Part shown: piece after piece, positions 3,194 through 56,094 of the stretch
Layout: each line of letters begins with the position of its first letter
Numbering within the stretch: position 1 is the first letter of the stretch
Assembly (NCBI GenBank): GCA_010909165.1
Contig: MU008159.1
Location: 2,418,001 to 2,482,000 of the forward strand
Reading direction: 5' to 3'
DNA length: 64,000 nucleotides
DNA from: Anthoceros angustus
Lineage: Eukaryota > Plantae > Anthocerotophyta
Notes under the pieces: model-generated
What the model saw: only the letters and a program-made list of their open reading frames with translations
The model's database searches: none
Told to the model about the DNA's origin: nothing
Translations under genes and position numbers: made by a program

Positions 3194-6100
3194 TGTGGGC
3201 TATGCACTTCCCTGGGGAGTTAGGAAATAAGTAGGGTTTCTGTTTTTTTTTTAGGATTGAAGGATAAATAAGGCGGAAAAGGAGGAATAAATTGGGGTAG
3301 CGCCGGAGGCTCGAGTATACTCCGACTCGAGTGAACAACGGACCCCGCACCACTATGGCAAGCTCCGACCGAGTAACGGATAAGTCCGAACCCACCTGTG
3401 TCAAAATAGGATAAGTACGCCAGGAAAGTAACCTAGGAGCGGAGGCGTGAGGATGACGAGGCGGCGCCACGTGACGGCCCCGAGTGGAGGTCGGGCATGC
3501 AGAGTCAGACCGTAACCTGCGAGGCCGCAGGCAGTATTCACGCCGCTGGCGCGCGGGCGTAAGGCCGCAGTAAGCGAAGCGTAGGGTCGAGGGCATGACA
3601 ACGAAGAGGCGCCTTCCGCCAGCACTTTCCACAAGCGGCCAAGAGGGAGGTCATGGCCGCGCAGCCTAACCCTCACAGCCCCTTGCGCCCGCAATCCGCT
3701 CGCGCCTTTTTGGGCGCCTTTAGAGCGTGGCGCACCGCTGGTTGGAGCAACAACGCGGGCGAAGGAGGAACATCGCGCGCCGACTCGCCAGCAGCAATAA
3801 GAGAGGAGGAGAAAGCAATGGCACCCAAAAGCCGACGGAAGTCTGGGAGCCATGGACCGTGGAGCGCAACATTGTGACCCGCGCTATCCGGACTTCGGGC
3901 CCCGAGGAGGAAGCGGAATTGGTGCAGAGTGGCATCCGGACGTGTTCCAAATGGTCTCGACCTTTGACAACGCTACCTAGTCCGGAGTTTGCCCGAAGAT
4001 GCAAGGGCGATCAACAAGGAGGTCCGATCCAAGAACCTCCGGAGGACTCGAGGCGATGGACCTTGAGGTCCCGAGGATGGCCTACAACCGCCTCAAGGAG
4101 GAAGAAGGGGGTGCCGAGCCCCTTAAGGCGGAAGATAGGGCCGCCACGGGCGGCGTCGAGGCTCGAACGCAGCGACAACCAACGGATGGTTGATATCCGA
4201 TCCGCCGGATACGAGTAAGGCGGTAGCCCGGATCATTGTCCATTGAACTCGCCACCAAGGTGGATCACCTTGGTGATAACTCGCTGGTATTCTCGCATGC
4301 GCCCAATGGGAAGAGAGCGGACTGGGAAGGATTATCTTCGCCCGGTCGCCAGAGGCACGCAAGCTAAGGAGCGAGAAGCCTCGCTTATCGGGCCGACCCC
4401 ATACCGATTCATGTATGGGGACATTTCGAGCCTCAAGGAGGGAGAGCTTGAGCGGCGCCCAAGGGGCCGGAGGCCCCGCTGTAAGTAGAGCGTGCAAGGG
4501 CGCCTGAGGTGGGGGTCGCCCTTCAAGACCAAGCGGACTCGGAGGAGGACGATCGAGGATTCCTGACTCACGCCCTGAGCGAACCCCTCACCACCTGTGG
4601 AAGTTTGGGAGGCGATTCCCCTTCCTCCTTTTGGTGCCCTCCGAGCACCGACAGTGAGGGAGCCGATGCCGGAGGGCGCTGGCGGCCCGCACCGGCTGCA
4701 AAAGCCCAACAACCACGACGGCCGCCGAGCCCCGACGAACTCAACGGAGCCAAGAGCGGAAGACGTGCCGCTTACCAACGCAAAGACCTCAAGGTGCCGG
4801 ACTTACCCCGCCACCTGAGTGGCAAGAGGTCAAGAGGCGTAAGGAGGCGTAAAGGGACGTGGCAAGGAGGAGGTCAGCAGCCCCACCTCGAGCCGGCCTG
4901 CCCCGGCTGTGAAGGGGCAAAAGAGCTTGCTCCCGACCCCTCACCTCCTCCGAGCCCTGTGGAGAAAGAGGGCACAAAGGAGTTAGAGGCCAAGAGGGCC
5001 AAGAGGGTGAGACTGACCACCACTGTGACCCGAGGGTCCCGATTAGGTCCGAGAACCCACCGACTTACTCCGGCATGGGTATGGAGGTCCTGGATCGAGA
5101 AATGCCGGCCCCACTACGGACTTTGTGGGGGCCTCACGGCCGTGGAAGAAACACGAGTCGCTACCGCCATGGACGGAATGCTTTGGGGTCTCGTGGTACA
5201 GGAGAAGACCTGTGAAGTGGAGGCCACCCGAGGAGGATGGTGGAACCCAAGAGCAAGGCGGCCGAGGGGCAAAGGAAAGGCGGAGTCCCTCGCCGATCGA
5301 GGAAGGGAAACGCCGGTGGCGGAGCGCGAGGCCCGGTTCACAGATCAAGGTTCTTCACCAGGCGAACACAAGCAAGCCTGGAGGCCCAAGCGGCGGAGGA
5401 CCTTGCTGCGAAGAGGGAAGCGCAGAGGCGGAAGAGGCCCGGCACAAGCAGAGAGCTCGGGACGCGGAGGCGGCCCGGCCAGAGCCAAGTGGGCGAGGCC
5501 TGTAAAGGCGGCGAGCGGAAGTCAAGGCAAGAGCGACCGGATCACTGCTGACGGATCGAACCGGTGGAAAGAGTCAAGAAAGACAGGAGATTCCAGTACC
5601 GGGCAGGCATGGGAAAGAAAAAGGAGCTACAACCCAAGATGCGCTGGAGCAGCAGTGATTCTCAACGAGAGAATCCACCGAGCACGAAAGAGTGCAGCCC
5701 AGCCCGGCCTCAAGACGGAGGAAAATCGCGACTATCCAAGGAGTTGGACGCTGCTGTGCTGCAAAGGAGCCGGAGGAAGTCCGAGCCTGACGGAGGTATC
5801 CGACCGCCTGAGAGGGAGTCATGGAGCTAAAGGCCGAATGAACGGAGGAGCGCGAGCACCGAAGCGTAAAAGAAGCCGGTCCACCGAAAAGGCGGAAGGG
5901 AACGCCGCGCTATGGCGGGTAAGCTGGAAAGGAAACGACGGAGCCGAGTGGAAAGGGAGCAATGTGCAGGAGGTGACCGAGGCCGCCTTGTAGCCTCGCG
6001 TGATACCCGCCCACCACAACTGGGCAGAGAGGTGGCCCAACAAGCCGGCAAAAGACGCCCCCCCTAACACTTATGGCGGAGGGAGTATCGGTGCCCGCAC

Positions 6101-11482: not shown

Positions 11483-14400
11483 TATGGGCTATGCACTTAC
11501 AGGGAGTTAGGAAATAAGTAGGGTTTGTTTTTTTAGGATTGAAGGATAAATAAGGAAAGGAGGAATAAATTGGGGTGGCGCTTGGACGAGGCTCGGGAGT
11601 ATACTCCGGACTCAGTGAACAACGGACCCGGTACCACTATGGCAAGCTCCGGACTCGAATGTGAGGATAAGTCAGGAACCCACTCGAGTCAAAATAGGAT
11701 AAATCATGTAACCTAGGAGGCGGGCGTGAGGGCGACAGGCGGCGCCACGTGGGCGGCCACAGTGGAGGTCGGCATGCGATGGGCGGCCCGCGAGGCCGTT
11801 ATAGCGGTATTCACGCCCCAGCAGCTGGCGGCGTAGGCAGTAAGCGGGCGTAGGGTCGAGTAAGCCATGCGGACCCACAGCGATTCTGGACAGAGCGCCT
11901 TCCAGATTACTTCCTGCGCGGCCAAGGAGGAGGTCATTTGTTGCGCGACCTCGACAATCCTCCACGGTCCCTTGCGCTCCAATCCGGCTCTCTGGCTGTC
12001 TTTTTGGCGCGGCTTAGGCGTGCGCCGTCAAGGTTGGAGCGGTGACGGCGAAGGAGGAACATCGTGCCGGACTCGGCCGGCGGCTACAGAGAGGAGAAAG
12101 CAATGGCACCCAAAAAGCCAGTGGGAGCCATGGACCCTCGTGGGCGCAACATTGTGACCAGCGCTATGGGACTTGAGGCCTGGTGGAGGCGGGGATTGGT
12201 CGGGAGTGGCATGGGCGTGTTCCAAATGGTGCGGACCTTTGACAGCGTCACTCTAGTCGGGAGTTTGCGGAAGATCTTGGATCAACAAGGAGGTCGATCA
12301 AGAACCTCGGGAGGACCAGGCGATGGACCTTGGATGGCCTAACCCGCGAAGGAGGAAGAAGGGGTGGTGCAGGCCCTTAAGGCGAAGGGAAGATAGGGCC
12401 GGCCAGTGGCGATCTTGAGGCACAGGCAGCGGACAACCAGGTTGATATGATCCGTCTGCTGGGCCGGTCGAGTAAGGCGGTAGCCGGATCATTATCCACT
12501 CACCAAGGTGGATCACCTTGGTGATAACTAGTATTCTGCATGCGCTCGGTGAGGAAGGCGGCGGGAAGGATTATCTTCGCCCGGTTCGGTCGGGAGAACG
12601 CAAGCTAAGGAGGCGAAGCCTCGCCATCGGTGACCCATGATTCATGTATGGGGACATTTCGAGCTCTGAAGGAGGGAGAGCTTGAGGCGCTCGGGAAGGG
12701 GCTGGAGGCCCCAGTAGGCGTGCAAGGCGCAGGTGGGGGTCGTCCTTGAAGACCAAGCGGACTCGGAGGAGGGCGGCGGGAGGATTCGGACTCCATCGTG
12801 CAGGCGAACCCCTCACCACCGGGAAGTTTGGGAGGATTCCCCTTCCTCCTTTTGGTGCCCCTCGGGCGGCCGAGGAGGCGTCTGGGAGGCGTTGGCGGCT
12901 CCCGGCGGCAACCACAACCGGTGCTGAGCCCCAGACTCGGTGGAGCCGAGGCGGAAGGCGGTGCCGCCTCGCGGCACCTCGAGGTGGGTGCCCCACCACC
13001 TTGCAGGTAGAGTGAGGCGGTGGAGGCGAGAAAGGGGCGTGGCCCAAGGAGGCGGGAGGTCAGCGGCCCACCGAGCAGTCTGTCCCGGCGGAAGGGCAAA
13101 AGAGCTTGCTCCGGACCCCCTCACCTCCTCAGAGCCCAGGAGAAGAGGGCACAAAGGAGTTAGAGGCCAAGAGGGCCAAGAGGGTGAGACTCGGACCTCA
13201 CCACTCGGGAAGGGTCTGATTAGGTCGAGAACCCGTCGGACTTACTCGGGCTGCGGTATGGAGGTCCTTGCGGACCCGAGAAATCGGCTCCCACGGACTT
13301 TGTGGGGCCTCACCGGCGGCCGTGGAAGAAACACGGCGAGTCAGCTACCGTCATGGACGGAATGCTTTGGGGTCTGTAGTAGTGAGAGAGACCCGAGTGG
13401 AGGCCACCGGAGGAGGATGGTGGAACTCCAAGAGCAAGTGGAGGCGGAGGGGCAAGGAAAAGGCGGAGTCCTCGCCGGATCGAGGAAGGGAAACGCTGGC
13501 GGAGCGAGGCCCGCGTTCACAGATCGGTTAAGGTTCTTCACAGGCAACAAAAAGCAAGCTCAGAGGCCCAAGCGCGGAGGACCTTGCAGTAAGAGGGAAG
13601 CGCAGCAGAGGCTAAGAGGCCCGCACAAGCAGAGAGCTCGGACCGCGGAGGCGGCCCGAGCAGCCAAGTGGGCGAGGCCTGTAAAGGCGGCGGGAGCCTG
13701 CCGCGCAAGAGAGCGACCGGATCACACGAGATCGAACCGTGGAGAGAGCCCAGTGAGGGACTCAAGGCCGACAAAGGCCATGGAGCAGTAAGGGCCAAGA
13801 CTCGGGAGATAGGGATCTCACAAAGGCAGAGGTAGAGGAGGCGCAGCAGATGGAGGATGAAGGACACGCTGGAGCTACAACCCAAGATGCGCTGAGCAGC
13901 AGTGATTCTCAACGAGAGAATCCACGACTCGAGCACGAAGTAGTGGCCCGTCTCAAGACGGAGGAAAATCGCGACTATCCAAGGAGTTGGACGCTGCTGC
14001 TGAAGGAGCTGGAGGAAGTCCCGAGCCTGACGGAGGTATCCGATCACTGGAGAGGGAGTCATGAGCTAAAGGCCGTAATGAACGGAGGAGCGCGCACCGG
14101 AAGTGAAGCGTCAGGGTCCACCGAAAGGCGAAGGGAACGCCGGCGGCGTGGTAAGCGGGCAATGGAAAGGAAACGACGGAGCCGGAGCAAGTGAGCAACA
14201 GCCGCAGGGAGGTGACCGAGGCCGCCTTGTAGCCTCACGTGTCTGACCCGGCTCGGTATCCAAATCTGGCGGAGAGGTGGCCCAACAAGCCGCGGCGCCC
14301 GACTCCGGAACACTTATGGCGGAGGGAGTATCGGGTGCTCGGGCTGCGTGGAAGAGCAATTCAACAAGTCGATTCGGACTTTGCCTATTACCACCGAGCT

Positions 14401-17400
14401 CCACGTGTAAAGCCTCTCGGCGCGCAAGCAGACGGACCCTGGAAGGCTCGGAAGGAGATGAAGGCCAGGGGCGGCCGGGGACCCTAGTGGCCTGTTTGAG
14501 ATAATGAGGCGGAGGCAGCGGAGGCGAGCGAGGGAGGCGGCGGATCACGGAGGTAAGCACCCCGCACCTCACCATGGAAGGAGGGGCCAGAAGAGTCACT
14601 TGAGGCGATCGGGAGCAGAGGACTTGAGGAGAGCCACGGAGGTCCGTGAGGAGGAAACCGGGTGGGCGTGAGTCCGGACTTGTCCGGACCCGGAGGGGCC
14701 GGACCACAGTCGGACCTCGGTAATAAGTCGGACCACCACGAAGTCCGGACCCCGTGTCATCCGGACCACGAGGTCCGGACCCCAGTCGGACCTAGCCGGC
14801 GGACCAGGAAATAAGCGGACTCACGAAGTTCGAGTCGAGGCGGACCTCGAGGGCCGGCTGCGGTGAGGAGGCCGCCGACTTCGCTAGGGAAGCCCGATAT
14901 GGTGGCCCCACCGTGAAGGACCCGAGGAGGGCGAGGAGGATGGCGTGTGCGCGGTTGTCGAACCGCCGTAATAACGGCAGATTCGGAGAGGAGGGGCCTC
15001 ACGGATCATCCGATTGGTGCACCACTGGTCGGGACGAAGTTGGACCACCCATTCGGCGGGGCCAGGACCTTCCACGGTCAGTCGGCGAAGGAGATAGGGA
15101 GATAGGGTGGTAGGCGGCGATTAGGGTATAGGTGGCTATCATTTCGAATAGGGGTGTAATAAAGGCGCCACCTTGGGCGCGATATAAGAGGGTGAGGCTG
15201 CTCTAGTAAAGCATCTTTCTCTTGGTGTTGATGCGCGTTCTTGCAGACCTTTGTGAGTCTTCTTGCTAACGTGAGTCACGAGTCAGCGAGCCGGCGCTCG
15301 GAAGGGGCTGGAGGCCACGAGTAGGCGTGCAAGGCGCGAGGTGGGGGTCGTCCTTGAAGACCAAGCGGACTCGGGAGGGTGTGTAGCCGGACGGAGGCCC
15401 AGGCAGCGGAGGAGGTCATTTTGCGACCTCGACAATCCTCACGGTCCCGCTCCGCAATCCGGCTCTCTGGCGCTATCTTTTTGGCGCCAGTCGGCTTAGG
15501 CGTCGAGGTTGGAGCGTGAGCGCGAAGGAGGAACATCGTGCCGGACTCGGCCGGCTACGGCAACAGGAGGAGGCAATGGCACCCAAAAGCCGTGATGCAG
15601 GGGCCATGGACCCTCGTGGGCGCAACATTGTGACCGGCGCTATCCGGACTTGAGGCCTGGTGGAGGCGGGGAATTAGTGCGGGAGTGGCATCTGGGCGTG
15701 TTCCAAATGGTGGACCTTTGACAGCGTCACTCTAGTCGGGAGTTTGCGGGAAGATCTTGGCGGCGATCAACAAGGAGGTCGGGCATGCATGGGCGGGGCC
15801 GTAACCTTGCGAGGCCGTTATAGCGGTATTCACGCCCGGCTGTAAGGCAGTGAGCGTAGGGTCGAGAGTAAGCCATGCGGACCCAGCGATTCTGGACAGC
15901 GCCTTCCCGGATTACTTCCTGGCGGCCAGGAGGAGGTCATTTTCTGCGCGACCTCGACAATCCTCACGGTCCCTTGCGCTCCATAATCCGGCTCTCTGGC
16001 GCTATCTTTTTGGGCGCTTAGGCGTGGCGCCCGTCAAGGTTGGAGCGTGAGCGCGAAGGAGGAACATCGTGCCGGCGGACTCGGCCGGCTGACAAGAGGA
16101 GGAGAAGCAATGGCACCCAAAAGCCGGAGTCAGGGGCCATGGACCCTCGTGGGCGCAACATTGTGACCGGCGCTATCCGGACTTGAGGCCTGGTGGAGGC
16201 GATTGGTGCGAGTGGCATCTGGGCGTGTTCCAAATGGTGCGGACCTTTGACAGCGTCACTCTAGTCGGGAGTTTGCGGGAAGATCTTGGCGGCGATCAAC
16301 AAGGAGGTCGATCAAGAACCTCCGGGAGGACCAGGCGATGGACCTTGGAGGTCACGAGGATGGCCTACAACCGCTTAGAAGGAGGAAGGGGCGTGGTGCA
16401 GGCCCCTTGAAGGGAAGATAGGGCCGACCACGGAGCGTCTTGAGGCACAGGCGGACAACCAGCGGATGGTTGATATCCGTCTGGCGGTCGAGTAAGGCGG
16501 TAGCCGGATCATTATCCATTGGAACACCTCACCAAGGTGGATCACCTTGGTGATAACCTCGCTGGCCTCGCATGCGCCCAATGGGAAGAGAGCGGACTGG
16601 GAAGGATTATCTTCGCCCGGCCCGCCAGAGGCACGCAAGCTAAGGCGAAGCCCTCGCCATCGGGCCGACCCCATACCGATTCATGTATGGGGACATTTGA
16701 GCTCTGAAGGAGGGAGAGCTTGAGCAGGCGCTCGGAAGGCTGGAGGCCACGAGTAGGCGTGCAAGGCGCGAGGTGGGGGTCGTCCTTGAAGACCAAGCGG
16801 ACTCGGGAGGAGGGCGGCGGGAGGATTCCGGACTCCATCGTGCAGGCGAACCCCCTCACCACCCGGGGAAGTTTGGGAGGCGATTCCCCTTCCCTCCTTT
16901 TGGTGCCCCTCCGAGCCGCATGTGAGGGAGCCGATGCCGAGGGCGCTGGGCCCGCACCGCAATGCCAGCCCAACAACCACGACGCCGGCCGAGCCGACGA
17001 ACTGGGAGCAAGAGGCGGAAGGCGGTGCCGCTTACCAACGCAAAGACCTCAAGGTGCGGTACTTACCGCCCACGGAGTGGCAAGAGGAGGTCGATCAAGA
17101 ACCTCCGGGAGGAGGCGAAGGGGCGTGGCCCAAGGAGCAGGAGGTCACCGCGCAGCCCCACCTCGAGCCGTCCTGCCCCGGCTGTGAAGGGGCAAAAGAG
17201 CTTGCTCCGGACCCCCTCACCTCCTCCGAGCCCTGTGAGAAAGAGGGCACAAAGGAGTTAGAGGCCAAGAGGGCCAAGAGGGTGAGACTCGGACCTCACC
17301 ACTCGGGACTGAGGTCTGATTAGGTCAGGAGAACCCACCGACTTACCCCGGATCATGGGTATGGAGGTCCTTGGCGGACCGAGAAATGCCTCCACCACGG

Positions 17401-20400
17401 ACTTTGTGGGGGCCTCACTCACGCGGCCGTGGAAGAAACACGGCGAGTCCTGCCACCGCATGGACGGAATGCTTTGGGGTCGCATGGAGAAGACCTGGAA
17501 GTGGAGGCCACCGGAGGAGGATGGTGGAACTCAAGAGCAAGTGAAGGCGGCCGGGGCAAAGGAAAAGGCGGAGTCCCTCGCTCGGATCGAGGAAGGAAGC
17601 AGCGGAGGCGGAGGAGGCGGCGGCGATCAACAAGGAGGTCGATCAAGAACCTCCGGGAGGACCAGGCGATGGAAGGAGGGCCAGCGAAGGAGGAAGGAAG
17701 CAGCGGAGGCGGAAGAGGCCGGGCACAAGCGAGAGCTCGGGACTGGCGGAGGCGGCCCGGCCAGAGGCCAAGAGGGCCAAGAGGGCCAAGAGGGCCAAGA
17801 GGGCCAAGAGGGCCAAGAGGGCCAAGAGGGTGAGACTCGGACCTCACCATGGAAGGAGAGAGTCCAGTACCGAGGCTAACTCAAGGCCGTGACAAAGTGC
17901 TATGGAGTGCAAGGGCCAAGACTGGGAGATAGGGATCTCCGAGTACACCGCAGGAGGTAGAAGGAGGCGAGATGGAGGATGCAAGAAGGACACGCTGAGC
18001 TACAACTCCAAGATCGTCGGGCGGCGGTGATTCTCAGCGAGAGAATCCACGACTCGAGCACGAAGCAGTGCCTCGGCTCCGTCGAAGGCGGAGGAAAATC
18101 GGCGACTATCCAAGGAGTTGGACGCTGCTGTGGTATGAGCCGGAGGAAGTGGAGGCCACCGGAGGAGGCGGAGGAGGTCCGTGAGGAGAGCCACGGAGGA
18201 GGCGGAGCTAAAGGCGAGAATGAGCGGAGGAGGCGGAGAGGAGAGAGGAAAAGGAAGCAGCGGAGGAGGTCCGGACCGAGAAAGGCGGAAGGAGCAGCTG
18301 CGCTATGGCGGAGGCGGCGGAGAGGAGAGAGGAAAAGGAAGCAGCGGAGGAGGCGGAGAGGAGAGAGGAAAAGGAAGCAGCGGAGGAGGCGGCCGAGGCC
18401 GCCCTTGTAGCCTCACGTGATACGCCCGCCCACCACAACTGGGCAGGAGAGGTGGCCCAACAAGCCGGCAAAGACGCCCACCCCGAACACTTATGGCGGA
18501 GGGAGTATCGGGTGCTCGGGCACCGTGGAAGAGGCAATTCAACAAGTCGATTCGGACTTTGCCTATTACCACGAGCGAGGCGGAGGAAGTCGGTCGGACC
18601 TGGCCGGCGGACCGAAGGCCTCAAGGAGATGAAGGCCACGGGGCCAGGACCCTAGTGGCCTGTTTGGAGATAGCGGGAGGCGGAGAGGAGAGAGGAAAAG
18701 GAAGCAGCGGAGGAGGCGGATGCGATCGAGGTAAGCACCCGCACCTCACCATGGAAGGAGGGCCAACGGCGAGTCACCGGGCGATCGGGAGCAGCGGAGG
18801 ACTTGAGGAGAGCCACGGAGGAGGTCCGTGAGGAGGAAACCGGGTGGGCGTGAGTCGGACTTTGTCCGGACCCGGAGGAGGCGGACCACAGTCCGGACCT
18901 CGTGTAAGTCCGGACCACAGTCCGGACCCGTGTCGTCCGGACCACGAGGTCGGGGACAGGTCGGACCTGGCCGGCGGACCCGAAATAAGCGGACTCCACG
19001 AGTCGAGAGGACCTCGAGGGCCGGGCGGCGATGGGAGGAGCCCCGACTTACGCTAGGGGAGCCGATAGGTGGCCCCACCGGGCGACCTGTGGGAGGCCGG
19101 AGGATGACGCCGTAACGGTTGTCGACCGCCAGAGCCCAACCGGCTGTGATTCCGGGAGAGGAGGGCCCGCCTCACGGATCATCCGATTGGGTGCACCACA
19201 AGCTGTCGGGGACGAGTTGGACCACCCATTCGGCGGGGCCAGGACCTTCCCACCCCACAATGGGCGAAGGAGATAGGGGATAGGATGGTAGGCGGCCGAT
19301 TAGGTATACCGACAAGCACGCCGTAATAGGGGTGTAATAAAGGCGCCACCTTGGGCGATATAAGAGGGGATGCTCTAGTAAAGCATCTTTCTCTTGGTGT
19401 TGATGCCGGCCTGCACCTTGTGAGTCTTCTTGCTAACGTGAGTCCCGAGTCACCGAAAGGTGCACGACTCCCGGGAGATTGATCAAGGTCCGTGACGGAC
19501 TTAACGCGTTGTGGTGTGTGCGGGGAAGGGTGGCGGTGATCGTGCTCGTCCGGACCACGGTCGGACCCGAGACAAGGTCGGACCCGAGACAAGGTCGGAC
19601 CCGAGGAGGCGGAGGAACTCGGGAGGTGTGTAGAGCCGGACGGAGAGGCCCGGAACGACGGAGGAGGTCCGTGAGGAGGAAACCGGGTGGGCGTGAGTCG
19701 GACTTTGTCCGGACCCGGAGGCCGGACCACAGTCCGGACCTCGTGTAAGTCCGGACCACGAAGTCCGGACCCGGGTAACAAGTCCGGACCACGAGGTCGG
19801 ACCCGAGACAAGGTCGGACCTGGCCGGCGGACCGAAATAAGCGGACTCACGAGTTGAGTCGAGGCAGACCTCGAGGGCCGGGCGGCGATGGGAGGAGCCC
19901 CGACTTACGCTAGGGGCCGATGGCCCGTGAAGGACCCGAGGGGGGCGAGGATACGTCGTGTAGCGGTTGTCGAACCGCGCCGGTAACTAACGGCGAGTTC
20001 GGGAGAGGAGGGCCTCACGGATCATCCGATTGGGTGCACCACAAGCTGTCGGGGACGAAGTTGGACCACCCATTCGGCGGGGCCAGGACCCTGATCGTGA
20101 AGGAGATAGGGGATAGGTGGTGGCGGCGATTAGGGTATCTGGGGCTATATTTCGAGAATAGGGGTGTAATAAAGGCGCCACCTTGGGCGCGATATAAGAT
20201 GAGGTGCTCTAGTAAAGCATCTTTCTCTTGGTGTTGATGCGCGTTCTTGCAGACCTTTGTGAGTCTTCTTGCTAACGTGAGTCTGAGTCAGCGGCGAGCA
20301 CGGCAGCTCGGAGATTGATCAAGGTCCGTGGCGGACTTAGCAGCGTTGTGGTGTGTGCGGGGAAGGGTGGCGGTGATCGTGCTCGTCCGGGGCAGCGGTC

Positions 20401-30599: not shown

Positions 30600-32057
30600 G
30601 ACCTCGCGCTTTGGGCTCAGGAAGGCTGCAAATGATCAAGCAACGAAGAACCCGACGGTGTCATGCACAGACGAGGGCAACAGATGCATCTCGACCAGGC
30701 ATACTGCCATGTGCATGCACACGGCTAGCACTACCAGTTCTGCTACTTACTGAAGTCTGAGACCTGACACAAGCTTGTTTGCGGACTTACATTGCCTCCA
30801 ATTAGCTTCGAAGATGTCCTTGATGTCACCGACGTCCCGGACGACGTCTCTGGCGTTGGCGTCAATATGCATGTCAAGGAGCGCATGAGCACAAATCTGG
30901 AAATACGTCAATTGCTCATTGGTGGCAATTCCGTCCCACCACACATGACTGGCAGCACGTAGCCCAACAAAGCACCACAAAGAAAGGCACAGCTTCAGAG
31001 CTGTAGCGGCGAGCTCACCAAATTGGAAGGCCGAGCTTGTGATGCAAAAACTGTCTTCAAGCACCGGAAGTTGGGCGGTGGGTCTCTCTCCCTCTTCTGA
31101 CTGGAGCAAAGGAAAATTCAGGGCGGTTATTAATTGCATGAGCCTGAGCCAGCGATGCTCTTGCCAATCAGCGCCTCCCGGCAGCAACTGCATGTTGCAG
31201 GGTGGAGCATGGGATGTGTTCGACAGATAGTCTCGCAAGTGACAGTTGTGAGCACAAGTCAGCAGTTGGCTGGCCATGACTCACAAACGCCGAGCACGTG
31301 GATGAGGGAGGCCGTGGTTGTAAGCCACCTCAACCAGATGGCGCCCGGTTTCCAAATCTGAAACGCCCCACGTTGCGTGCCTGCCATTCGCCTGCCTTCG
31401 CGGCCTACGAGGTTTCCATTGTCGGGTTCCATAATGGCTACTCCCCTGGCCTCTGTTTGTGCCGCTCTTGATCCCAGCATTCGCGCATGCTTGGTTTTTT
31501 GGCTGGCGTTGTTGTATGCCCATGACTCTTTTGTTCATCGTTGCTGATATTCTGGTCCTCTACCTCTTCTTCCACCTCATGGTGGAGCTGGTGAGCTTGT
31601 CCTTAAGTGTGTTGGATGCTTTTTGCGTTTGAATTGGGAGTCTGTCGTGGGCAGGGGCTTGCTGCGGTGATCCAGCCTTTTCTACGTGGGTGTGCCAGCA
31701 TCACCGCACTGTTGAGTGGGTGCGTAAGTGCAGCGCTTCGGAATTTGCTCTGATTTCCTGATCATCATAGATCCTCTTTTTGCAGTGCCCACTTCCTGGA
31801 TGTTGTGTGAAGTCCTGATTGCGATATCCTGTCATTCTTAGAGCTTGGCCCAGTTCTTCATCCTGGGAAAACCATGAGGATTGACCGTGCACTCAGTACA
31901 TTCGTATTAAGCCTCTTGACGTAGAAGGCATTCCTGAGGAATGTGCGTGGGTGATAGCACTATGTCATGTTCTAGGCATGGGAAATTGTATGGCATGGTG
32001 CCTGATTCAGTGTAGTAGCTGTCGTGCAATTCGGGGGACGTGTTTGTGAAGAGCAGA

Positions 32058-34606
32058 ATGCCAGTGTTGTCGGCACATTGTTTTGCGAATCATAAGGGGG
32101 GTGTGGGAAAAACAACGCTTTGTTATCAGATTGCAGCTCAGTACGCTGCAGCACATCCCGATGTAAATATTTTGGTTGCGGACTTCACTGAGGTTAGTTC
32201 CTACCGTGTATACGTTCTGGGTTAACGTTACTGCATGTCGCATAGCTGAAGGGGAATAGAAGGTGCAGATGCATCAGTATCCTCTGACAAGGACACCTAG
32301 CTCTTCTTGCTAGCCACTTCACTAACAGAGCTGCTCATAACACTGGGCAACACACTGTATTTTCAGGCAGGTGATGTCTCAGAGATCCTACTGGGTGGCA
32401 TGCAAGAGGACAGAGGTCGGAAGGCACTGGTGCAGCTAGTGACTTTGTCGAACGTCACTCACTTATGTCTTAAAGCTTTGGCAGCCAGTGTTCGCCTCAG
32501 CGTAGAACATGAAGCCCAATCAAGCACACGAACGGGTGATGGCATTGGAAGTGCACCAGAAGCCTCCTTTTATGAGAAGGTGCTGGAGCACTTGCCTAAA
32601 CGAAAGAAGACCAAGGTAAAGCTTAATTAACTTCATGCTGCCTTCTTTGGAAGGGCAGCTTGTTATGAATGACTTGTGCTACTGTTCGTCAAAGCTGGAT
32701 GCAGGGTGCAGAGACCAGGACGTTGTTTTGAGAAGCGAAGCCGACGTAGATGGCCCCAGAAGTGAAGGCAGTGTAGATATATCTGAGTTTGCTATCCCTG
32801 TACATTCAGTAAATGAGCGAATTCCTTCAAACTTGTATTTGTGTCCCAGTGGAGTGGAGTTTGAGCCACTGATCAGGTTTTCTAAATCACAACAGCGAAG
32901 AATTATTTCTGTTCTTAGACGGTGAGCGTGCTTACATGTGTGCTCTAGGTTTCCCCTCTTAATGGGGACATTGTTATCAAGGGCTACATAGATCCCTCGT
33001 GGTTGCCCCCTGATGCAGCTCGTTCGAAGAAGCAGACGGTGATTGGAAGGTGTTCATGGACACTGATGCCCCTTACCAGGATCAGGATGAAGTGTATACC
33101 GAACTCGCTCTGGGCATATCCCACTTCTGCATCTTGCCACTTCATGCTGACATCAGTGAATGGCTACGAGCCAAGACGACGTTGAGGGTGTTGAGGAATT
33201 TGCGTGAAGAGCGTGACTGCGTATGCACAGTAAGTACCTATGGTGGTTTTATGTCCTGCCAATGGGACTGAGTCAAGTTTGTCAAAGATAATCGATTGAA
33301 GTCAAGAGTTGCACATGCAGTTGCAGATGATCATATGGAACAAGCTGTCTGTTCAGAACAATCGTGAGAGTCCATGCATCGGTACTCAAAAATGTTCCTT
33401 CACCCCTACGAAGGCAGAACAGGTAGAATTTCCCGTCCTCCTCGTTGTCCAGCAACGACACTGGTACTTCATGCTTGGCACACAAATCCAGCTGCAGGAA
33501 GATTATGTCATGGTAGTGGAATGAGCTGTCATTAAAGGTGCATTGTTGTGGTTGGATCTGCGGTCTTAGGACTTACTACGAAGTCTCCACAGCCTTGTAC
33601 ATGAAGAGGCTAAGCAGCATCCAGAAGACTTCATCAACTTCAGGACAGAAGAAGGAACAGCATCGCCGTTCAAGCCTGCTGTGTGCATGAGAAACTTGAG
33701 CGTGGTTGGGCTTGCATCCAAGGACATGGGGGTGCCTATATCCGTGTTACATGCGGGCACGTTTCATGGAGTGCACATGACATACAACCTGAGCCAGTAT
33801 TCAGTCAGCTCTTGCAGGTTCCTTACATGCTCCTCAGAATTTCATGCCCCAGCTACAGTTTGGCTTCACACCTGCCTGAATCTTCAACCTGGCTTCTTGT
33901 TTCATGTGCATGCTGTGGCTTGCAGAGCCAATTTACGCCTCCTTGTGGAATCGATTGACGCGGGAGACGAACTTTTGAAGCTCCCTCGAGGTGGTTCTCT
34001 TTCGGAGGCTCGAATGCCCTTAAATCAAAAGGGAAGTAAAGAGTCCGCGGATGGAATTATGACTCCCGAGAGAATTCCAGATCCCGCAGCCGAGGTTTTC
34101 AATCCTCAGACGACTCAGGGGCCTCCAGATGAAGGTGCACATCCCGAGGGAGATGAGGATGTGGATGAGCAGCAGCTCGAAGTGCACGTCACGGATGCTA
34201 GTGCCGAGCAGGGCGCGGATCCAGTTGCCGATGCTGGAAGGGAAAGGGGACAGGAGGAGCCTGCTCCACGTGAGCCAGCTGCGAAGATGCTGAATGGTAA
34301 GGCTCATCAGCCGCTGGCACTATTTCCACTGTCAGTTCCGAGAGATTCCAATTTCCGAGCCCGCAAATGTCTTGAATGCAGCTCGGGATGGGATGCTGAT
34401 CTCCTATCACTGTAGATGCAGATCAGAAGCCGGAGCCCCGGCCAGTGCAGCGTCGAGCCAGACGGCCTTCGAGAAAGGGCAGAGTCTCGCAAGTTGTGCA
34501 CAGAGTGCAGCGTTACTCCCTGAGGAATCTGTACTCCTTGAGAAGCAGAAGCTGTGGGAAGACTTTCAGCCTGCACAGCGACGGTCGACGTCGGTTGCGG
34601 AATTAG
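32058..34606 (+). CDS. ParA/Soj-family (SIMIBI) P-loop ATPase, 8 exons: 32058-32192, 32367-32615, ~32695-32921, 33019-33229, 33321-33422, 33570-33817, 33926-34296, 34416-34606 (~577 aa)
   Basis: Deviant Walker A ANHKGGVGKTT, ILVADFTE-AGDVSEILLGG, IPSNLYLCPSG, Walker B-like VFMDTD..YTELAL...ILPLHAD, IIWNK. Seven GT-AG introns give a continuous stop-free frame; the exon 3 and 5 acceptors are ambiguous by a few codons. Confidence 0.88.
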
Positions 34607-49700: not shown

Positions 49701-52700
49701 TTTTGTTACAGTCTTGTTGCAATTTTGTTGCAGTGTAGTGAGAGGTGGTATCTGCCCCTTTCAAAATTTCAACATATTTGCAACAACCAAAGTGTTACAT
49801 CCTCTTTTGTTACAGTTTTGCAGGCTTGACACCGATCCTCCTCCCCATGTAGGTTTACCATTATTGCTTATATTCCTGTGTTTTTCCCTTGCCATTATTG
49901 TTATGCGTGTACCAGACTATACGTATATAATATGCCTTGGCTTGCAGGTACGTATTTTCCGATATCATTATTGAAATACATATACGCTGCCTTTTCAAAA
50001 AAGTATACGTACATGTGGTTTCCGTGTTGTGCACTTTGTTTTGTCTGATGCGGCTGCGTATTATATGCGCTTTTGTTTCCACCCTATTCGCTGTAGTGCC
50101 TTTTTCGTCACTCGTATTTCGTGCCCTTGTAGGCGTCCCCCATATAATGTACTTGTTTTGGAAACCCTTACAGTCCAAAAAGACAACAGAAGACGTTGTT
50201 TCGTGCACCCTATAGATAAGATGCCGGTTCTGCATCCGCATCCACATCCAAGATTGACCGTCCTCCCTCCGCGCGTGGGATGAATGAATCGGCATCCACA
50301 TCCGCGGAGTACCGTGCTCCCTCATCGCGCGGGAGGAATGAACCGGCATCCACATCCGCGACCTACCGTGCTCCCTCCTCGCGTGGGAGGTGTGAATTTG
50401 GGGTTGTGGTGGGCATTTTGTCCCGCCTGCTCGTTCGAGCATGCCTACTCCTCGTCGTATCACGGCTGAAAGCATCCACCTCCCACACGGCTAGCGATTT
50501 TGCCCTTTCCCTTCCTCAACCGGTCTGCTGCCTTTTTCTTCCGTCTCCTGATTCCACCTATTTCCGGATTTTGCAAAGATGGACTCAATCATGATATACG
50601 ATAGTTCGACGGTGTTGGGGTCTCGAGTCTTGAAGATGGAATGGATGTCATTTGCACACCACTCCTCGTGAAAGCCATGGATCAATGCCTCATCGACAAG
50701 TAGGTACAAGAGGAGCAATAATTGTAGGAGTTGCATAAGAAGAGTTCTCTTGGGATACTTGCGAGTCGGATGATCTACCAACCGAGGTTGTTGATGGCGA
50801 AGATGATGAGCTCAGGGGTGAACATCTTGATCACGGGATCCTGCGACCCAAGAGGAGAAGGAACAGATTCCCAGAAGAAAAGAGTTTGCACATAGTTGAT
50901 AAGCTAGTTGATAAGCTCAAGAGATGTCAAGAGGATGGTGTGAGTGAAATTCCCTTCAAAATGCAAAGCACCACTAGAGAAGCCTCATCAAGCGATCGCA
51001 TTGGAAAGAAAAGCAAACTTCTTGGTAGCAATAAGGGCTTTGTAAGGCTTGACAACCTCCTTGTATAATGGATTATGATGAGACTTGGGTGGGACAAAAG
51101 GGCACGGAGATCTACCAAGGTGAGTGAGGAAACGAAGGTGTTTGCATTCATCATCAAACCAGGGGATGACAAGTAGCAATGTTGGAGAGTTTTGTTACTG
51201 ATCTTGTTGCAATTTTGTTGCGATGTAGTGAGAGGTGGTATCGCCTTTTCAAAATTTCAACATATTTGCAACAACCAAAGTGTTACATCCTCTTTTGTTC
51301 TGATTTTGCGGGCTTGACACGATCCTCCTCCCCATGTAGGTTTACCATTATTGCTTATATTCCTGTGTTTTTCCCTTGCCATTATTGTTATGCGTGTACC
51401 AGACTATACGTATATAATATGCCTTGGCTTGCAGGTACGTATTTTCCGATATCATTATTGAAATACATATACGCTGCCTTTTCAAAAAAAGTATACGTAC
51501 ATGTGGTTTCCGTATTTGTGCACTTTGTTTTGCAATACGGTGCGGCCTGCGTATTATATGCGCTTTTGTTTCCACCCTATTCGCTGTAGTGCCTTTTTCG
51601 TCACTCGTATTTCGTGCCCTTGTAGGCGTCCCCCATATAATGTACTTGTTTTGGAAACCCTTACAGTCCAAAAAGACAACAGAAGACGTTGTTTCGTGCA
51701 CCCTATAGATAAGATGCGGTTCTCGCATCCACATCCAAGATTGACCGTCCTCCTCGCGTGGGATGAATGAATCGGCATCCACATCCGCGAGTACCGTGCT
51801 CCCTCATCGCGGGAGGAATGAACCGCATCCACATCCGCGACCTACCGTGCTCCCTCCTCGCGCGGGAGGTGTGAATTTGGGGTTGTGGTGGGCATTTTCT
51901 GTTGCCCCGCCCGTTCTCGTTTCAGAGCATGCCTACTCCTCGTCGTATGCAGCAGCTGGAAACGTCCACCTCCCACACGGCTAGCGATTTTGCCCTTCCC
52001 CTTCCTCAACCGGTCTGCTGCCTTTTTCCTTCCGTGCTGCAGCTCTGTGATTCCACCTATTTCCTGGGATTTCTGCAAGAACAGATGACCACATGCCATT
52101 CCCATGGCCCTTGGCCTGTAAGTATATACAGCTGGCCAGCAGTGCACTTGCAATTTCTAGGCTTACCTTCGCGGCCTTCTCTTTGTTTTGTTGCCGCCCA
52201 CTTCCTGCCTCCAGTTGCGTGCTTGTCACCGTCCCTTGGGCAGCCACAGCCCTCGATCGTGTTACTCTTACTTCCCCATCCGCCTTGCCAGGCATTCCTC
52301 TTCCTTTCCTCTTCCGGCCACCTCCCTCCTCCATAACTTGCGTCACCTTTTCTGGAGCCCCACTGTACAGGTCCATGCTCTCGGCCTCTGAGTCGGCCAG
52401 GTATGTGTCTGGTACAAAGTTCGGCACGGGCTCGTTCACATCTTCCTCCTCTTCTGCCACCTCCCTGTTCTCTTCCTCCTCGTCACCATGTCGTGACGCC
52501 GTCAGTCTGTCCATTGGAGGCTACTGGAATCCCCGTGACAGATGTCTCATTTCTCTCTCTCGCCTCCATTCCCTAGCTGCCCCCAATGAGGGCAACGTTT
52601 TTTTTGCACCATTGGGCACACATGTCGTCACCCCACGGTCCCCCCCTACTGCCCTCCATTGTTCCTCCTGCCCATCCTGCGCCTCCATTGTTCCTCCTGC

Positions 52701-54370
52701 CCATCCTGTTGCGCCCCTACCAGCCTTGATGTCCGCTGTATAATGCCATTCCCTGCATGTGTACCTGGCCCCATGTACAACTCACTTACCGCTAACGCCG
52801 CTCTCCCTACCATGTTCTTCGTTGCCCCCGTTTTTCTCGAGCCACCCACGGCCACCATGTCCCCCCCTCTACGATCATGACCACTGTTGTGTTCTGCCAC
52901 AACCACGGCCGTTCGTGGTGTCGCTGGGACCACCACCTCATCGCCCTCGCCATAGTCGACAATGTCAGTCGCCTTGCCCCTGGCTGCCATCACACCGCCA
53001 TGCGCTTTTGTTTCCACCTATGTGAGTGCCTTTTCACTCGTATTTCGTGCCCTTGTAGGCGTCCCCATATAATGTACTTGTTTTGGAAACCCCATAAATT
53101 CAAAAGACAACAAGACGTTGTTTCGTGCACCCTATAGATAAGATGCTGCTCGCATCCGCATCCACATCCAAGATTGACCGCCTCCTCCGCGTGGGATGAA
53201 TGAACCGGCATCCACATCCGCGGAGTACCGTGCTCCCTCATCGCGGGAGGAATGAACCGGCATCCACATCCGCGACCTACCGTGCTCCCTCCTTGCGCGG
53301 GAGGTGTGAATTTGGGGTTGTGGTGGGCATTTTCTGTTGTCCCGCCCGTTCTCGTTTCAGAGCATGCCTACTCCTCGTCGTATGCAGCAGCTGGAAACTG
53401 TCCACCTCCCACACGGCTAGCGATTTTGCCCTTTCCCTTCCTCAACCGGTCTGCCTTTTTCTTCCGTGCTGCAGCTCTGTGATTCCACCTATTTCCTGGG
53501 ATTTCTGCAAGAACAGATGACCACATGCCATTCCCATGGCCCTTGGCCTGTAAGTATGTACAGCTGGCCAGCAGTGCACTTGCAATTTCCAGGCTTACCT
53601 TCGCGGCCTTCTCTTTGTTTTGTTTCCGCCCACTTCCTGCCTCCAGTTGTGTGCTTGTCACCGTCCCTTGGGCTGCCACAGCCCTCGATCGTGTTACTCT
53701 TCCTTCCCCATCCGCCTTGCCAGGCATTCCTCTTCCTTTCCTCTTCCGGCCTCCTCCCTCCTCCATAACTTGCGTCACCTTTTCCGAGCCCATGCAGTCC
53801 ATGCTCTCGGCCTCTGAGTCGGCCAGGTATGTGTCTGGTACAAAGTTCGGCACGGGCTCGTTCACATCTTCCTCCTCTTCTGCCACCTCCTCTTCTCTTC
53901 CTCCTCGTCACCATGTCGTGACGCTGGCCCCGTCCATTGGAGGCTCGGAATCCCGTGATGATGTCTCATTTCTCTCTCGCCTCCATTCCACAGCTGCCCC
54001 AATGAGGGCAACGTTTTTGCACCATTGGGCACACATGTCGTCACCCACGGCCACCATGTCCCCCTCACGCCTCCATTGTTCCTCCTGCCCATCCTGGTGC
54101 GCCCTACCTTGATGTCCTGATAATGCCATTCCCTGCATGTGTACCTGGCCCCATGTACAACTCACTTACCGCTAACGCCGCTCTCCCTACCATGTTCTTC
54201 GTTGCCCCCGTTTTTCTCGAGCCACCCACGGCCACCATGTCCCCCCCTCTACGATCATGACCACTGCTGTGTTCTGCCACAACCACGGCCGTCAGGTGTC
54301 GCTGACCACCACCTCATCGCCCTCGCCATAGTCGACAATGTCAGTCGCCTTGCCCCTGGCCGCCATCACA
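49066..54370. repeat. Two overlapping ~1.5-kb tandem duplications
   Basis: 49066-50567 is repeated at 50568-~52080; ~51560-53000 is repeated at ~53000-54370. Both contain a ~55-bp internal repeat (GCATCCACATCC...GCGTGGGA). Confidence 0.9.
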
Positions 54371-55298
54371 CCGCTGCGCTTTGCCCCACCGTGTTAGCAT
54401 TTCCTTCTCTCGCCGGTCGCACCCCTGTTTTGTTTGTTCTCTCATTTTGTGCTCCATGGCCTTCCACCTGCCTTGACGTCCTGTCCTCCCATGGTCGATC
54501 GTTCATCTCGTGACGTCCCTGTCCATGTCGGGTTCCACTTCTGCCTTGTTGTCCCGTGCTATTCGTCCTTCCTGCCTGCACATTCGTCCGCATTTTTCCT
54601 CCACCACATGCTAGTGGCTCCCCTTCTGCGACTCGAATGCCTGCCCGCCTCACATCTATCGCCCTACTGTCCGTTTCGAAGGATTCACCCATTCCCACTA
54701 TCCTCCTCCATGGGAAGGCCACGAGATCAGGATCCTCCTCCAACTCTATATCATTCAGCAACGCAGTCCTTTCCCGCGTTCTCCTGGCAATTGCCTGCAT
54801 CTCGTGGGTTCGTCCATACTTTGCCTCCCTCACACGTCTGAGGAACTCCGGCACCGAATCCTCCCTGTCGCGGACTGCCCATAGCCCTTCCATGTTTGTC
54901 GTTCCTTCTAACATTCCATACTCTGCCTCGTCATCTGCAGGATACATGCCATACCGTTTGTGAAAATGCAACACCCAGCCTGTCCGGCCTCCCTTTCCCC
55001 ATGGGTTTGGACCCATACCGCCATTTTTGGCTAGTCTCTCCTTGGCTGCAATTTCGTGCTTGGAGGGCTGAAAACAGCCGTTCCTTTTCAGCTCGTGTCG
55101 AGCCCATGCTAAGGCATCTTCCCACTCTTCCTCGTCCACCATGGAAGGTTTCCTATTCGGAGGAAGATCCCCCTTTTCCCTCTCTTCCAGCGCAACGGCC
55201 TTCGCAGCATCCACACATCTAGCATTGCGTGTCCGCGTCATTTGAGAGAAATGACTACCTATGCACTTCACCAATAAATCTGGAAAGGCTTCCACCAC
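54366..55298 (-). pseudogene. Transposon-associated ORF, possibly CACTA (En/Spm) TnpA/Transposase_24-like; continues into low-complexity acidic ORFs at 52000-54300
   Basis: 310-codon open frame with KPSMVDEEEWE...KERLAKNGG..NPWGKGG, reminiscent of Ptta/En-Spm ORF2; located among other DNA-transposon fragments. Confidence 0.4.
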
Positions 55299-55389
55299 AC
55301 ACTTTATTAACCGGGCCTTCTTTACTTTCGAAACGTCCCTCCACCTTGTCAGGTGGCCCAGAGGGCACTTTAGCGACTAGAAGAGGTGA

Positions 55390-55862
55390 CCAGGTGGCAA
55401 GCACCACCACATGTGGCCAACAATACCACATGTGGCCACCAGGACCACTGGTGGCCAACATTACCACATGTGGCCACCAGCACCACTGGTGGCTAGCAAC
55501 CCGGGAGGTGGCCACCAGCACCACTGGTGGCCAGCAACCCGGGAGGTGGCCACCAGCACCACTGGTGGCCAGCAACCCGGGAGGTGGCACCAAGACCACC
55601 GTGGCCGAACCGGGAGGTGGCCACAGACCACCGGTGGCAAGAATCGGGAGGTGGCCACCACCACCGGTGGCCAAGAACGGAGGTGGCCACCACCAGTGGC
55701 CAGAACGGAGGTGGCCACCAGCACCACTGGTGGCCAGCAACCCGGGAGGTGGCCACCAGCACCACTGGTGGCTAGCAACCCGGGAGGTGGCCAGCAACCC
55801 GGGAGGTGGCCAGCAACCCGGGAGGTGGCCACCAGCACCACTGGTGGCCAGCAACCCGGGAA
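55390..55862. repeat. GC-rich minisatellite (~39-bp unit) with internal palindromes
   Basis: CCAGCAACCCGGGAGGTGGCCACCAGCACCACTGGTGG and variants, more than 10 units; CCACCAG...CTGGTGG is self-complementary. Confidence 0.92.
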
Positions 55863-56094
55863 GTACACAGCTGGAACACAAACAGGTGGAACACAAACAT
55901 AGGAGTGGCCAATCGTCAGCCAGTATCTCGCGAAACAGCCTGCATAAATAGTTCACTAAAATCTCACCACATTCAACAAGGAAGGGAAGACATCAACATC
56001 CACCAGGTACAATAGGCCACGGTCAATCCCATCTCCCAAATGAACCAGATGGCTGCATTTTAATGATACAAATGCCCAAGTATGCGCTAAAACT

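Follow-up and report, generated by a model that had tools for sequence, protein, structure and literature searches.

Structure of the gene at the Anthoceros angustus locus

We analysed a stretch of 64,000 nucleotides (nt) from the hornwort Anthoceros angustus (contig MU008159.1, positions 2,418,001 to 2,482,000; this whole stretch is here called the window, and positions are counted within it), which carries at 32058-34606 on the + strand a gene predicted to encode an ATPase of the ParA/Soj class. Three-frame translation yielded a model of eight exons and seven introns, each of the introns being GT...AG, 79-174 nt long and compatible in phase. The spliced exons add up to 1734 nt, or 577 codons and a stop without any internal stop, so that the eight GT-AG exons and the stop-free frame of about 577 residues proposed in a preliminary description of this DNA were recovered. 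The parts of the gene are as follows.

32016..32018, + strand: in-frame TAG, 14 codons 5' of the ATG, with no intervening ATG
32058..32192, + strand: exon 1, with the start Met, the deviant Walker A motif N11-H-K13-G-G-V-G-K18-T-T and strand 2 with the Walker A' Asp42 (L-V-A-D)
32367..32615, + strand: exon 2, with the switch region G-D-V-S-E-I-L-L-G-G and the first half of a plant-specific helical insert, its 3' end encoding PKRKKTK
32695..32921, + strand: exon 3, with the remainder of the insert and the conserved block F-A-I-P-x-x-x-V-N-x-R-I-P-S-N-L-Y-L-C-P-S-G
33019..33229, + strand: exon 4, with the Walker B motif W-K-V-F-M-D-T-D, then Y-T-E-L-A-L and L-P-L-H-A-D, and the invariant D196, P222 and D226
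33321..33422, + strand: exon 5, with the strand that holds an invariant Asn (I-W-N-K-L), and T-P-T-K-A-E-Q
33570..33817, + strand: exon 6, the C-terminal section of the ATPase core (M-R-N-L-S-V-V-G-L-A-S-K-D-M-G-V-P-I, H-G-V-H-M)
33926..34296, + strand: exon 7, with the final core helix R-A-N-L-R-L-L-V-E-S-I-D, followed by a long acidic linker specific to this genome
34416..34606 including the stop, + strand: exon 8, with the basic cluster R-R-A-R-R-P-S-R-K-G-R and the tandem Y-x-L-R motif R-Y-S-L-R-N-L-Y-S-L-R-S-R

The exon 3 block carries a family-invariant Asn (N152, in the numbering of the Cryptomeria japonica orthologue P0007), and the codon split across the junction of exons 3 and 4 takes two bases from exon 3 and its third from the first base of exon 4. 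Exon 7 is acidic, with 28 D+E against 11 K+R among 123 residues, and exon 8 is basic (31% K+R) and contains RYSLRNLYSLRSR.

The window protein was searched exon by exon, and full-length orthologues served as its proxies in the profile, fold and complex work; joined exon coordinates were used solely for counting codons, stops and charged residues. Exon 1 alone matched Pfam AAA_31 (E 2.3e-6, 28.1 bits against a cut-off of 27) and also CbiA, and NCBIfam ParA_partition matched it under its cut-off (E 7.9e-7). Exons 2-8, searched singly, had no credible counterpart in Pfam or NCBIfam, the sole row being a chance-level DUF1582 on exon 3 (E 0.087), and exon 4 had no match among PDB sequences and none among plasmids (tblastn).

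An unnamed family in seed-free plants and conifers

We then searched exon 4 with phmmer, filter-free, against 1.84 billion (1.84e9) representatives, followed by the full-length protein P0001 and by profile searches. The exon 4 search returned only three relatives (P0001-P0003), two of which were traced to plants, P0001 being a full-length protein of Diphasiastrum. The plant members of the family thus assembled come from Diphasiastrum complanatum, Psilotum nudum (a EukProt transcript), Adiantum capillus-veneris, Cryptomeria japonica and Taxus chinensis, together with the transcript L001, an intron-less Logan contig of 1727 nt (ERR550394) that is gymnosperm-like and 73-77% identical to the conifer proteins. 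All of them are annotated as hypothetical or uncharacterised. No angiosperm, moss or liverwort protein was found in the representative and profile searches, where the proteomes of these groups are well represented, and the same database searches found no member from a streptophyte alga. The sequences define an unnamed plant family common to this hornwort, lycophytes, ferns and conifers.

Cryptomeria japonica has three copies, one full and two truncated (P0002 and P0011). The truncated ones lie on other chromosomes, encode 301 and 256 residues with the P-loop region missing, and probably represent pseudogenes or incomplete gene models.

Exons 1-6 and exon 8 all align to the orthologues, and only exon 7 and the region of the junction of exons 2 and 3 are poorly conserved. 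Five of the seven junctions (E1/E2, E3/E4, E4/E5, E5/E6 and E6/E7) lie inside conserved sequence; across E6/E7, compared by eye, the window reads C-R-A-N-L-R-L-L-V-E-S-I-D where the orthologues read C-R-E-N-L-E-E-x-V-K-A-I-D. Since six other plants have proteins, predicted or transcribed independently, with which exons 1-6 and exon 8 each align, the model lies far beyond chance. Furthermore, the orthologues of Psilotum and of the gymnosperm-like sample are transcribed and spliced, and the genes of Adiantum (GCA_014529385.2) and Cryptomeria (GCA_030272615.1), with a coding sequence of about 1.45 kb spread over about 2.5 kb, therefore have introns too. These comparisons confirmed that the predicted gene at 32058-34606 is real, intact and intron-containing.

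The N-termini of the orthologues begin M-P-V-x-S (M-G-V-V-S in Diphasiastrum) and align with exon 1 of the window. In the window, the Met stands 10 residues before the P-loop with the in-frame TAG upstream, and in L001 an in-frame TGA stands 18 codons 5' of the ATG; all six full-length orthologues and the window gene have the same start Met. The common Met and the upstream in-frame stops in the window and in L001 indicate that no leader peptide is missing, in agreement with the earlier remark that there is no space for a transit peptide.

Switch I of the plant proteins is followed by a helical insert of about 60-80 residues, which is missing from the bacterial relatives, and the plant proteins also have a disordered C-terminal extension of 90-190 residues. 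In every orthologue a basic K/R cluster occupies the same position in this extension, and about 20-40 residues past the cluster follows the tail motif Y-x-[LT]-R-x-x-Y-[SP]-L-R-x-[RK] (alignment columns 470-500). This motif occurs in the fragment P0002 and in the five orthologues with models extending to the C-terminus; the model for Taxus (P0008) is partial and stops before it. The PKRKKTK sequence, the acidic linker and the Arg-rich tail pointed out in the preliminary description are thus all present, but PKRKKTK lies in the variable insert and is not conserved, and it is the other basic cluster, before the tail, that is kept in position.

Catalytic motifs and predicted fold

Thirteen positions are invariant in 47 plant, eukaryotic and bacterial sequences (N11, G14-K18, D42, N152, D196, P222, D226, N259 and G344), and the window exons contain every one of them. 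The deviant Walker A motif K-G-G-x-G-K-[ST], with its N-terminal signature Lys, is found in the window with K13 and K18, and both the Walker A' residue D42 (exon 1) and the Walker B residue D196 (F-M-D-T-D, exon 4) are present. The signature Lys is also found in Diphasiastrum and in all bacterial relatives, whereas the gymnosperm and fern orthologues P0006-P0010 have Arg in its place (N-H-R-G-G-V-G-K).

The fold was predicted for the core of P0007 with AlphaFold2 (AF2) from a deeper alignment, giving a predicted local distance difference test (pLDDT) score of 84 and a predicted template modelling (pTM) score of 0.86; an earlier AF2 model from six sequences, with a pLDDT of 52, was discarded. 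When this core was compared with the PDB by Foldseek, the top 25 matches were all ParA, Soj, McdA or PF-32 proteins, with MinD, NifH/BchL and MipZ ranked lower. The first ranks were taken by ParA-ATP (8RAY), the Helicobacter and Thermus Soj proteins, P1 ParA, pNOB8 ParA and McdA, and the leaders 8ray, 8jml, 2bek, 3ez2 and 6non had a probability of 1.0 and a template modelling (TM) score by target of at most 0.75. The best Atlas matches were bacterial ParA clusters of 339-374 residues (TM 0.72/0.80 over 306-316 residues). A plant-only profile found P-loop matches only among PDB sequences; a combined family profile matched Soj/ParA at E 1e-14 to 1e-12, MinD at about 5e-7 and GET3, over the P-loop only, at about 5e-5. 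When two copies were modelled as a homodimer with ATP and Mg, the score was 0.04, which speaks neither for nor against dimerisation.

The eukaryotic SIMIBI ATPases used for comparison are plastid MinD, Mrp/NBP35 and GET3, and the preliminary description had held that the protein is not MinD, NBP35, HCF101 or GET3. Indeed, minD_bact scored 13.6 bits against a cut-off of 212.9, and the tail is basic and disordered, not amphipathic, with no leader at the other end. PF10609 (ParA/NUBPL) scored 19.7 bits against 27.1, over the P-loop only, and the conserved core has no C-x-x-C, which rules out NBP35/HCF101/IND1. For GET3/ArsA, ArsA_ATPase scored 16.4 bits against 24.3 and TIGR00345 scored 13.4 against 135. 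Since the model scores are far under their cut-offs and Soj/ParA is matched best by the family profile, membership in the MinD, NBP35/HCF101 and GET3 families was rejected, as that description had it. The predicted protein is thus, by its motifs and modelled fold, a highly divergent ParA/Soj-class (SIMIBI, deviant Walker A) putative ATPase.

The ParA/Soj proteins (Thermus 2BEK, Helicobacter 6IUB/8JMJ and ParA-ATP 8RAY) and McdA (6NON), which are the best structural matches and also the best PDB sequence matches of the family profile, share with the plant family the deviant Walker A motif, the Walker A' and Walker B aspartates and the overall fold. However, the plant protein is about 130 residues longer in its core and has an added C-terminal tail, its similarity to ParA/Soj beyond the P-loop needs profiles to be seen, and the plant proteins have no known partner gene of the ParB or McdB type. 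Plastid MinD1 (ARC11) is likewise a nucleus-encoded SIMIBI ATPase with a deviant Walker A motif. MinD1 is of cyanobacterial descent and bears a transit peptide as well as a membrane-targeting helix at its C-terminus, whereas the window protein has neither transit peptide nor C-terminal membrane helix.

Bacterial family A and other relatives

A search restricted to the core brought in more distant relatives, namely the membrane-anchored proteins P0013 and P0014 (E 1e-17 to 1e-14), a marine group from Tara Oceans (P0016-P0019) and P0015. When one genome of each prokaryotic species was scanned, P0015 proved to be a member of a bacterial family of long ParA proteins, here called family A (about 340-370 residues; loci L012-L048; 28-60% identity). 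Family A occurs in at least 10 phyla (Bacillota, Bacteroidota, Cyanobacteriota, Pseudomonadota, Planctomycetota, Verrucomicrobiota, Chlorobiota, Myxococcota, Bdellovibrionota and Poribacteria), with examples in Anaerocolumna sedimenticola (L012), Phocaeicola coprophilus (L013), Microcoleus (L016) and Chimaeribacter (L025). No NCBIfam model reached its cut-off on family A, and no PADLOC model matched it.

Comparison of profiles by hhalign aligned the plant family with family A end to end (columns 5-380 against 2-350), at a probability of 99.9 and E 7.2e-36 over 319 columns. With canonical chromosomal ParA, the alignment had E 4.5e-17 over 232 columns and ended at column 320, about 60 residues short of the C-terminus. 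The plant proteins and family A in fact have a common C-terminal subdomain of about 60 residues that canonical ParA does not have, and the region of exon 6 can be aligned to family A but not to canonical ParA. Family A also shares with the plants N-x-K-G-G-V-G-K, V-L-V-I-D, P-x-N-L-x-L, W-x-V-x-I-D-T, Y-T-x-x-A, P-x-x-A-D and the invariant Asn. A likeness to a bacterial orphan ParA family, noted from the motifs at the outset, was thereby substantiated, since family A carries I-Y-T-E-L-A, P-x-N-A-D and P-x-N-L-x-L. The two differ in that the plants alone have the helical insert, the disordered C-terminal extension and introns, and their identity is about 20-25%.

The membrane-anchored group (P0013, P0014 and L145) shares with the plants the F-A-N-H-K-G-G-V-G-K-T motif and a collinear core, but has an N-terminal transmembrane helix, a basic stretch after that helix and no C-terminal tail, and is only about 23-25% identical to the plant proteins. 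In the neighbourhood of P0013 and P0014, a MetAP of the bacterial or organellar type 1 is uninformative as to their source. At L145:3840-4960, on a metagenomic contig with a guanine-cytosine (GC) content of 38%, an exon for the transmembrane helix is joined to the P-loop exon over a 47-nt GT-AG phase-1 intron, which marks this group as eukaryotic. The Atlas cluster nearest by features is 92% Eukaryota, mostly Chlorophyta.

In the Tara Oceans scaffolds L004-L007, which encode P0016-P0019 and have a GC content of 40%, each ParA-like gene is followed by about 1.8-2.7 kb without a called gene, which suggests a eukaryotic or otherwise non-bacterial source. Viral contigs gave mostly P-loop-only matches. 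Among them, L092, an uncultivated virus genome (UViG) from an isolate genome and possibly a prophage, holds a full-length member of family A (21% identity), and L097 holds a full-length ParA-like protein with 23% identity to Psilotum P0009 that groups with early-branching family A loci; the viral contig scan revealed neither a giant-virus source nor a closer relative of the plant family. The metagenome scan likewise found no relative closer to the plant family, and one relative of the membrane-anchored group, L145.

Phylogenetic placement of the plant family

We inferred a tree of 94 sequences by IQ-TREE (LG+C20), rooted on canonical ParA. The plants formed one clade (99), within which the gymnosperm rows grouped together and the fern rows grouped together, as in the species tree. 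They were sister to the membrane-anchored group with a Shimodaira-Hasegawa-like approximate likelihood ratio test (SH-aLRT) value of 99, inside a family A clade with an SH-aLRT of 100. When the two eukaryotic groups were analysed one without the other, both still fell in family A, at different and weakly supported places.

Since lycophytes, ferns and conifers also have the family, any transfer must be older than the divergence of these groups from this plant. On this distribution, the ancestor shared by this plant and the vascular plants already had the gene, whatever the route by which it came. A bacterial origin is favoured by the distribution of the sequences, with many bacterial phyla on one side and patchy eukaryotes on the other, while the topology is no proof of it. 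An ancient transfer from a bacterium to a eukaryote would be the most economical origin, made by the land-plant common ancestor at the latest, and earlier if the membrane-anchored relatives are true sisters.

Putative function and the HEPN-linked bacterial loci

The comparison of the orthologues shows what appears to be an intact ParA/Soj-type nucleotide switch, kept over several hundred million years. By analogy with ParA, Soj and MinD, the plant protein would be an ATP-dependent dimerising switch, in which ATP may close a sandwich dimer and so create a surface for a matrix or partner, and hydrolysis would reset it. The disordered C-terminal extension may supply the localisation, probably nucleo-cytoplasmic, as well as partner or nucleic-acid binding. 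Clusters resembling nuclear localisation signals (NLS) occur in the window at K-R-K-K (exon 2) and R-R-A-R-R (exon 8). A nucleo-cytoplasmic location is plausible because the protein has the basic cluster and the tandem tail motif and has no leader; a nuclear one draws on motifs only, namely the NLS-like basic clusters and the conserved tandem Y-x-L-R tail.

The bacterial loci offered no support for the earlier label "partition-type". No ParB-like neighbour was found in any of the 37 family A loci, the relatives being orphans, and in seven of these loci, which belong to one subclade, the ATPase gene is directly followed at its 3' side by a HEPN RNase gene (Pfam HEPN_RiboL-PSP, best E 3.5e-12). 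These genes lie at the following positions.

L034:7073-7672, HEPN_RiboL-PSP gene
L035:2956-3555, HEPN_RiboL-PSP gene
L036:1475-1900, HEPN_RiboL-PSP gene
L039:7055-7654, HEPN_RiboL-PSP gene
L040:7025-7624, HEPN_RiboL-PSP gene
L042:7117-7692, HEPN_RiboL-PSP gene
L048:7066-7665, HEPN_RiboL-PSP gene

In six of the seven loci the HEPN gene encodes 192-200 residues and begins 2-11 nt past the ATPase gene, and in L036 it encodes 142 residues and begins 284 nt downstream. Mrr-type restriction genes lie beside two other family A loci, and the remaining 30 of the 37 loci have no conserved neighbour. The pair of ATPase and HEPN protein in this subclade is a candidate two-gene conflict module. Dyads of a HEPN protein and a ParA/Soj-like ATPase have been predicted to be toxin-antitoxin pairs with the ATPase as the antitoxin (Anantharaman et al. 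2013, PMC3710099). The two-gene arrangement is the same as in the family A subclade, but the published dyad involves the MAE_18760 HEPN family, whereas the partner in family A matches HEPN_RiboL-PSP, and the link is indirect.

Genomic surroundings

The window also contains a Lipase_3 gene, a MYB-CC (PHR-type) gene, a pentatricopeptide repeat (PPR) gene of the PLS class with an E motif, retroelement remains and nuclear tRNA genes, at a GC content of 52% and with introns of about 100 nt; gene content, GC content and intron length agree with a hornwort genome. The surroundings of the ATPase gene are ordinary plant nuclear DNA; the preliminary description had likewise placed the gene among ordinary plant genes, as the Lipase_3, MYB-CC and PPR genes bear out. 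Within the window, no partner gene of the ParB, MinE or McdB type and no HEPN gene is adjacent to the ATPase gene. Proteins of the PLS class with an E motif are typical of land-plant organelle RNA-editing factors. Further features of the window are listed here.

3400-6000, 12570-14200 and 16540-18000: related Arg/Gly/Glu-rich open frames in three copies within the first 19 kb, consistent with copies of a long terminal repeat (LTR) retroelement
38995-40951, + strand: MYB-CC (PHR1-like, LHEQLE motif) transcription factor gene with at least two exons
43773-46610, - strand: single open frame of 945 residues, the PLS-class pentatricopeptide protein with an E motif
42031-42103 and 46645-46717, - strand: two tRNA-Lys(CTT) genes with equal Rfam scores, on either side of the PPR gene
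51900-52750 and 53360-54120: near-duplicate blocks with similar open frames on both strands, which suggest a tandem or segmental repeat
55229-55956, both strands: long open frames across a Pro/Gly/His/Trp-rich repeat (units such as P-G-G-G-H-Q-H-H-W-W)
55383-55478: ARAGORN call of a 96-nt tRNA-Pro inside that repeat, probably spurious

Discussion

We consider it probable that the window holds an intact plant nuclear gene for a ParA/Soj-class protein, whose unnamed plant family descends from bacterial family A or is sister to it. Several observations weigh against this conclusion or limit its reach. The evidence on fold and from profiles was obtained with orthologues that share about 50% identity with the window protein, and not with the window protein itself. 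The replacement of the Walker A Lys by Arg in the gymnosperm and fern orthologues means that the catalytic cycle may differ there. The branches of the plants and of the membrane-anchored group are very long (1.7-3.6 changes per site), and placement within family A has a weak support of 77-93. Finally, in an approximately unbiased (AU) test, a tree with the bacterial family A as a clade that excludes the eukaryotes was not rejected (p 0.084), and the direction of transfer therefore rests on distribution, not on topology. The horizontal acquisition put forward in the preliminary description stands as far as the affinity to bacterial-type proteins is concerned. The gene is, however, not private to this genome, the nesting of the plants in bacteria is left unsecured by the AU test, and membrane-anchored eukaryotic relatives exist.

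These relatives give some substance to a different history, possible but on balance doubtful, in which an old eukaryotic gene was acquired once, deep in the history of eukaryotes or of the green lineage, and passed on vertically with many losses, with no horizontal gene transfer to land plants. The gene would have kept a membrane anchor in algae and protists, and the land-plant branch would have lost the anchor and gained the basic tail. Such a course would accord with the sister relationship of the plants to P0013 and P0014, with L145, which has the same membrane-anchor architecture and is eukaryotic by its intron, with the largely chlorophyte Atlas cluster and with the outcome of the AU test. 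On the other hand, both eukaryotic groups are long-branched and may attract each other, and separately they attach at different places in family A; their mutual identity is low, and the database searches returned no member from streptophyte algae, mosses, liverworts or angiosperms. As to activity, we think it unlikely that the plant protein is a regulatory ATPase from a bacterial conflict (toxin-antitoxin or defence) module, now controlling a partner enzyme and having no positioning role. The HEPN genes 3' of the ATPase in seven of the 37 loci, the Mrr-type genes near two others, the published prediction for HEPN-ParA/Soj dyads and the lack of ParB-like neighbours in all loci speak for it. However, the HEPN link is confined to one subclade with which the plants never grouped in any tree, the other 30 loci have no conserved neighbour, no PADLOC model matches the family and no HEPN partner is known in plants. 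That the gene instead encodes an organellar ATPase of the MinD, Mrp or GET3 type with a missed targeting exon is highly improbable: the superfamily is the same, and there are weak P-loop-only matches to GET3, ArsA, MinD and NifH, but the family-specific models score far below their cut-offs, the profile prefers Soj/ParA, and the start Met is shared by six full-length orthologues and the window, with in-frame stops upstream. A decaying or chance open frame, or bacterial contamination of the assembly, has just as little to recommend it. The poor conservation of exon 7 would fit decay, but the gene has seven spliceosomal introns and 577 stop-free codons, retains every catalytic residue and lies in one contiguous sequence with plant-specific genes on both flanks, and orthologues are transcribed and spliced in Psilotum and in the gymnosperm-like sample.

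The probable reading, that of an intact ParA/Soj-class gene whose family is tied to family A, thus concerns a real, unannotated and evolutionarily interesting family, for which a nuclear ParA system is a minority possibility. Searches of the literature for such a ParA/Soj-like family in plants or in eukaryotes at large yielded nothing relevant. Next to the eukaryotic SIMIBI ATPases compared above, the plant family would stand as a third, non-organellar, ParA/Soj-like lineage that extends from a hornwort to conifers with intact catalytic motifs and a lineage-specific conserved tail. It would add a clear case of an ancient bacterium-derived land-plant gene lost from flowering plants, and its comparison defines a bacterial family together with its eukaryotic offshoots. 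ParA/Soj-type ATPases are standard bacterial devices for positioning DNA and large cargos. It is conceivable, though we give it little credence, that seed-free plants and conifers keep an ATP-driven positioning or patterning machine of the ParA type outside the organelles, which would dimerise on ATP and, by its basic tail with the tandem Y-x-L-R motif, ride on chromatin or another cellular surface and organise cargo. If true, this would be the first ParA/Soj-like system at work in the nucleus or cytoplasm of a eukaryote, one that flowering plants later lost, and the family may in any case provide a direct way to study by experiment what a ParA-like switch does in eukaryotic cells.

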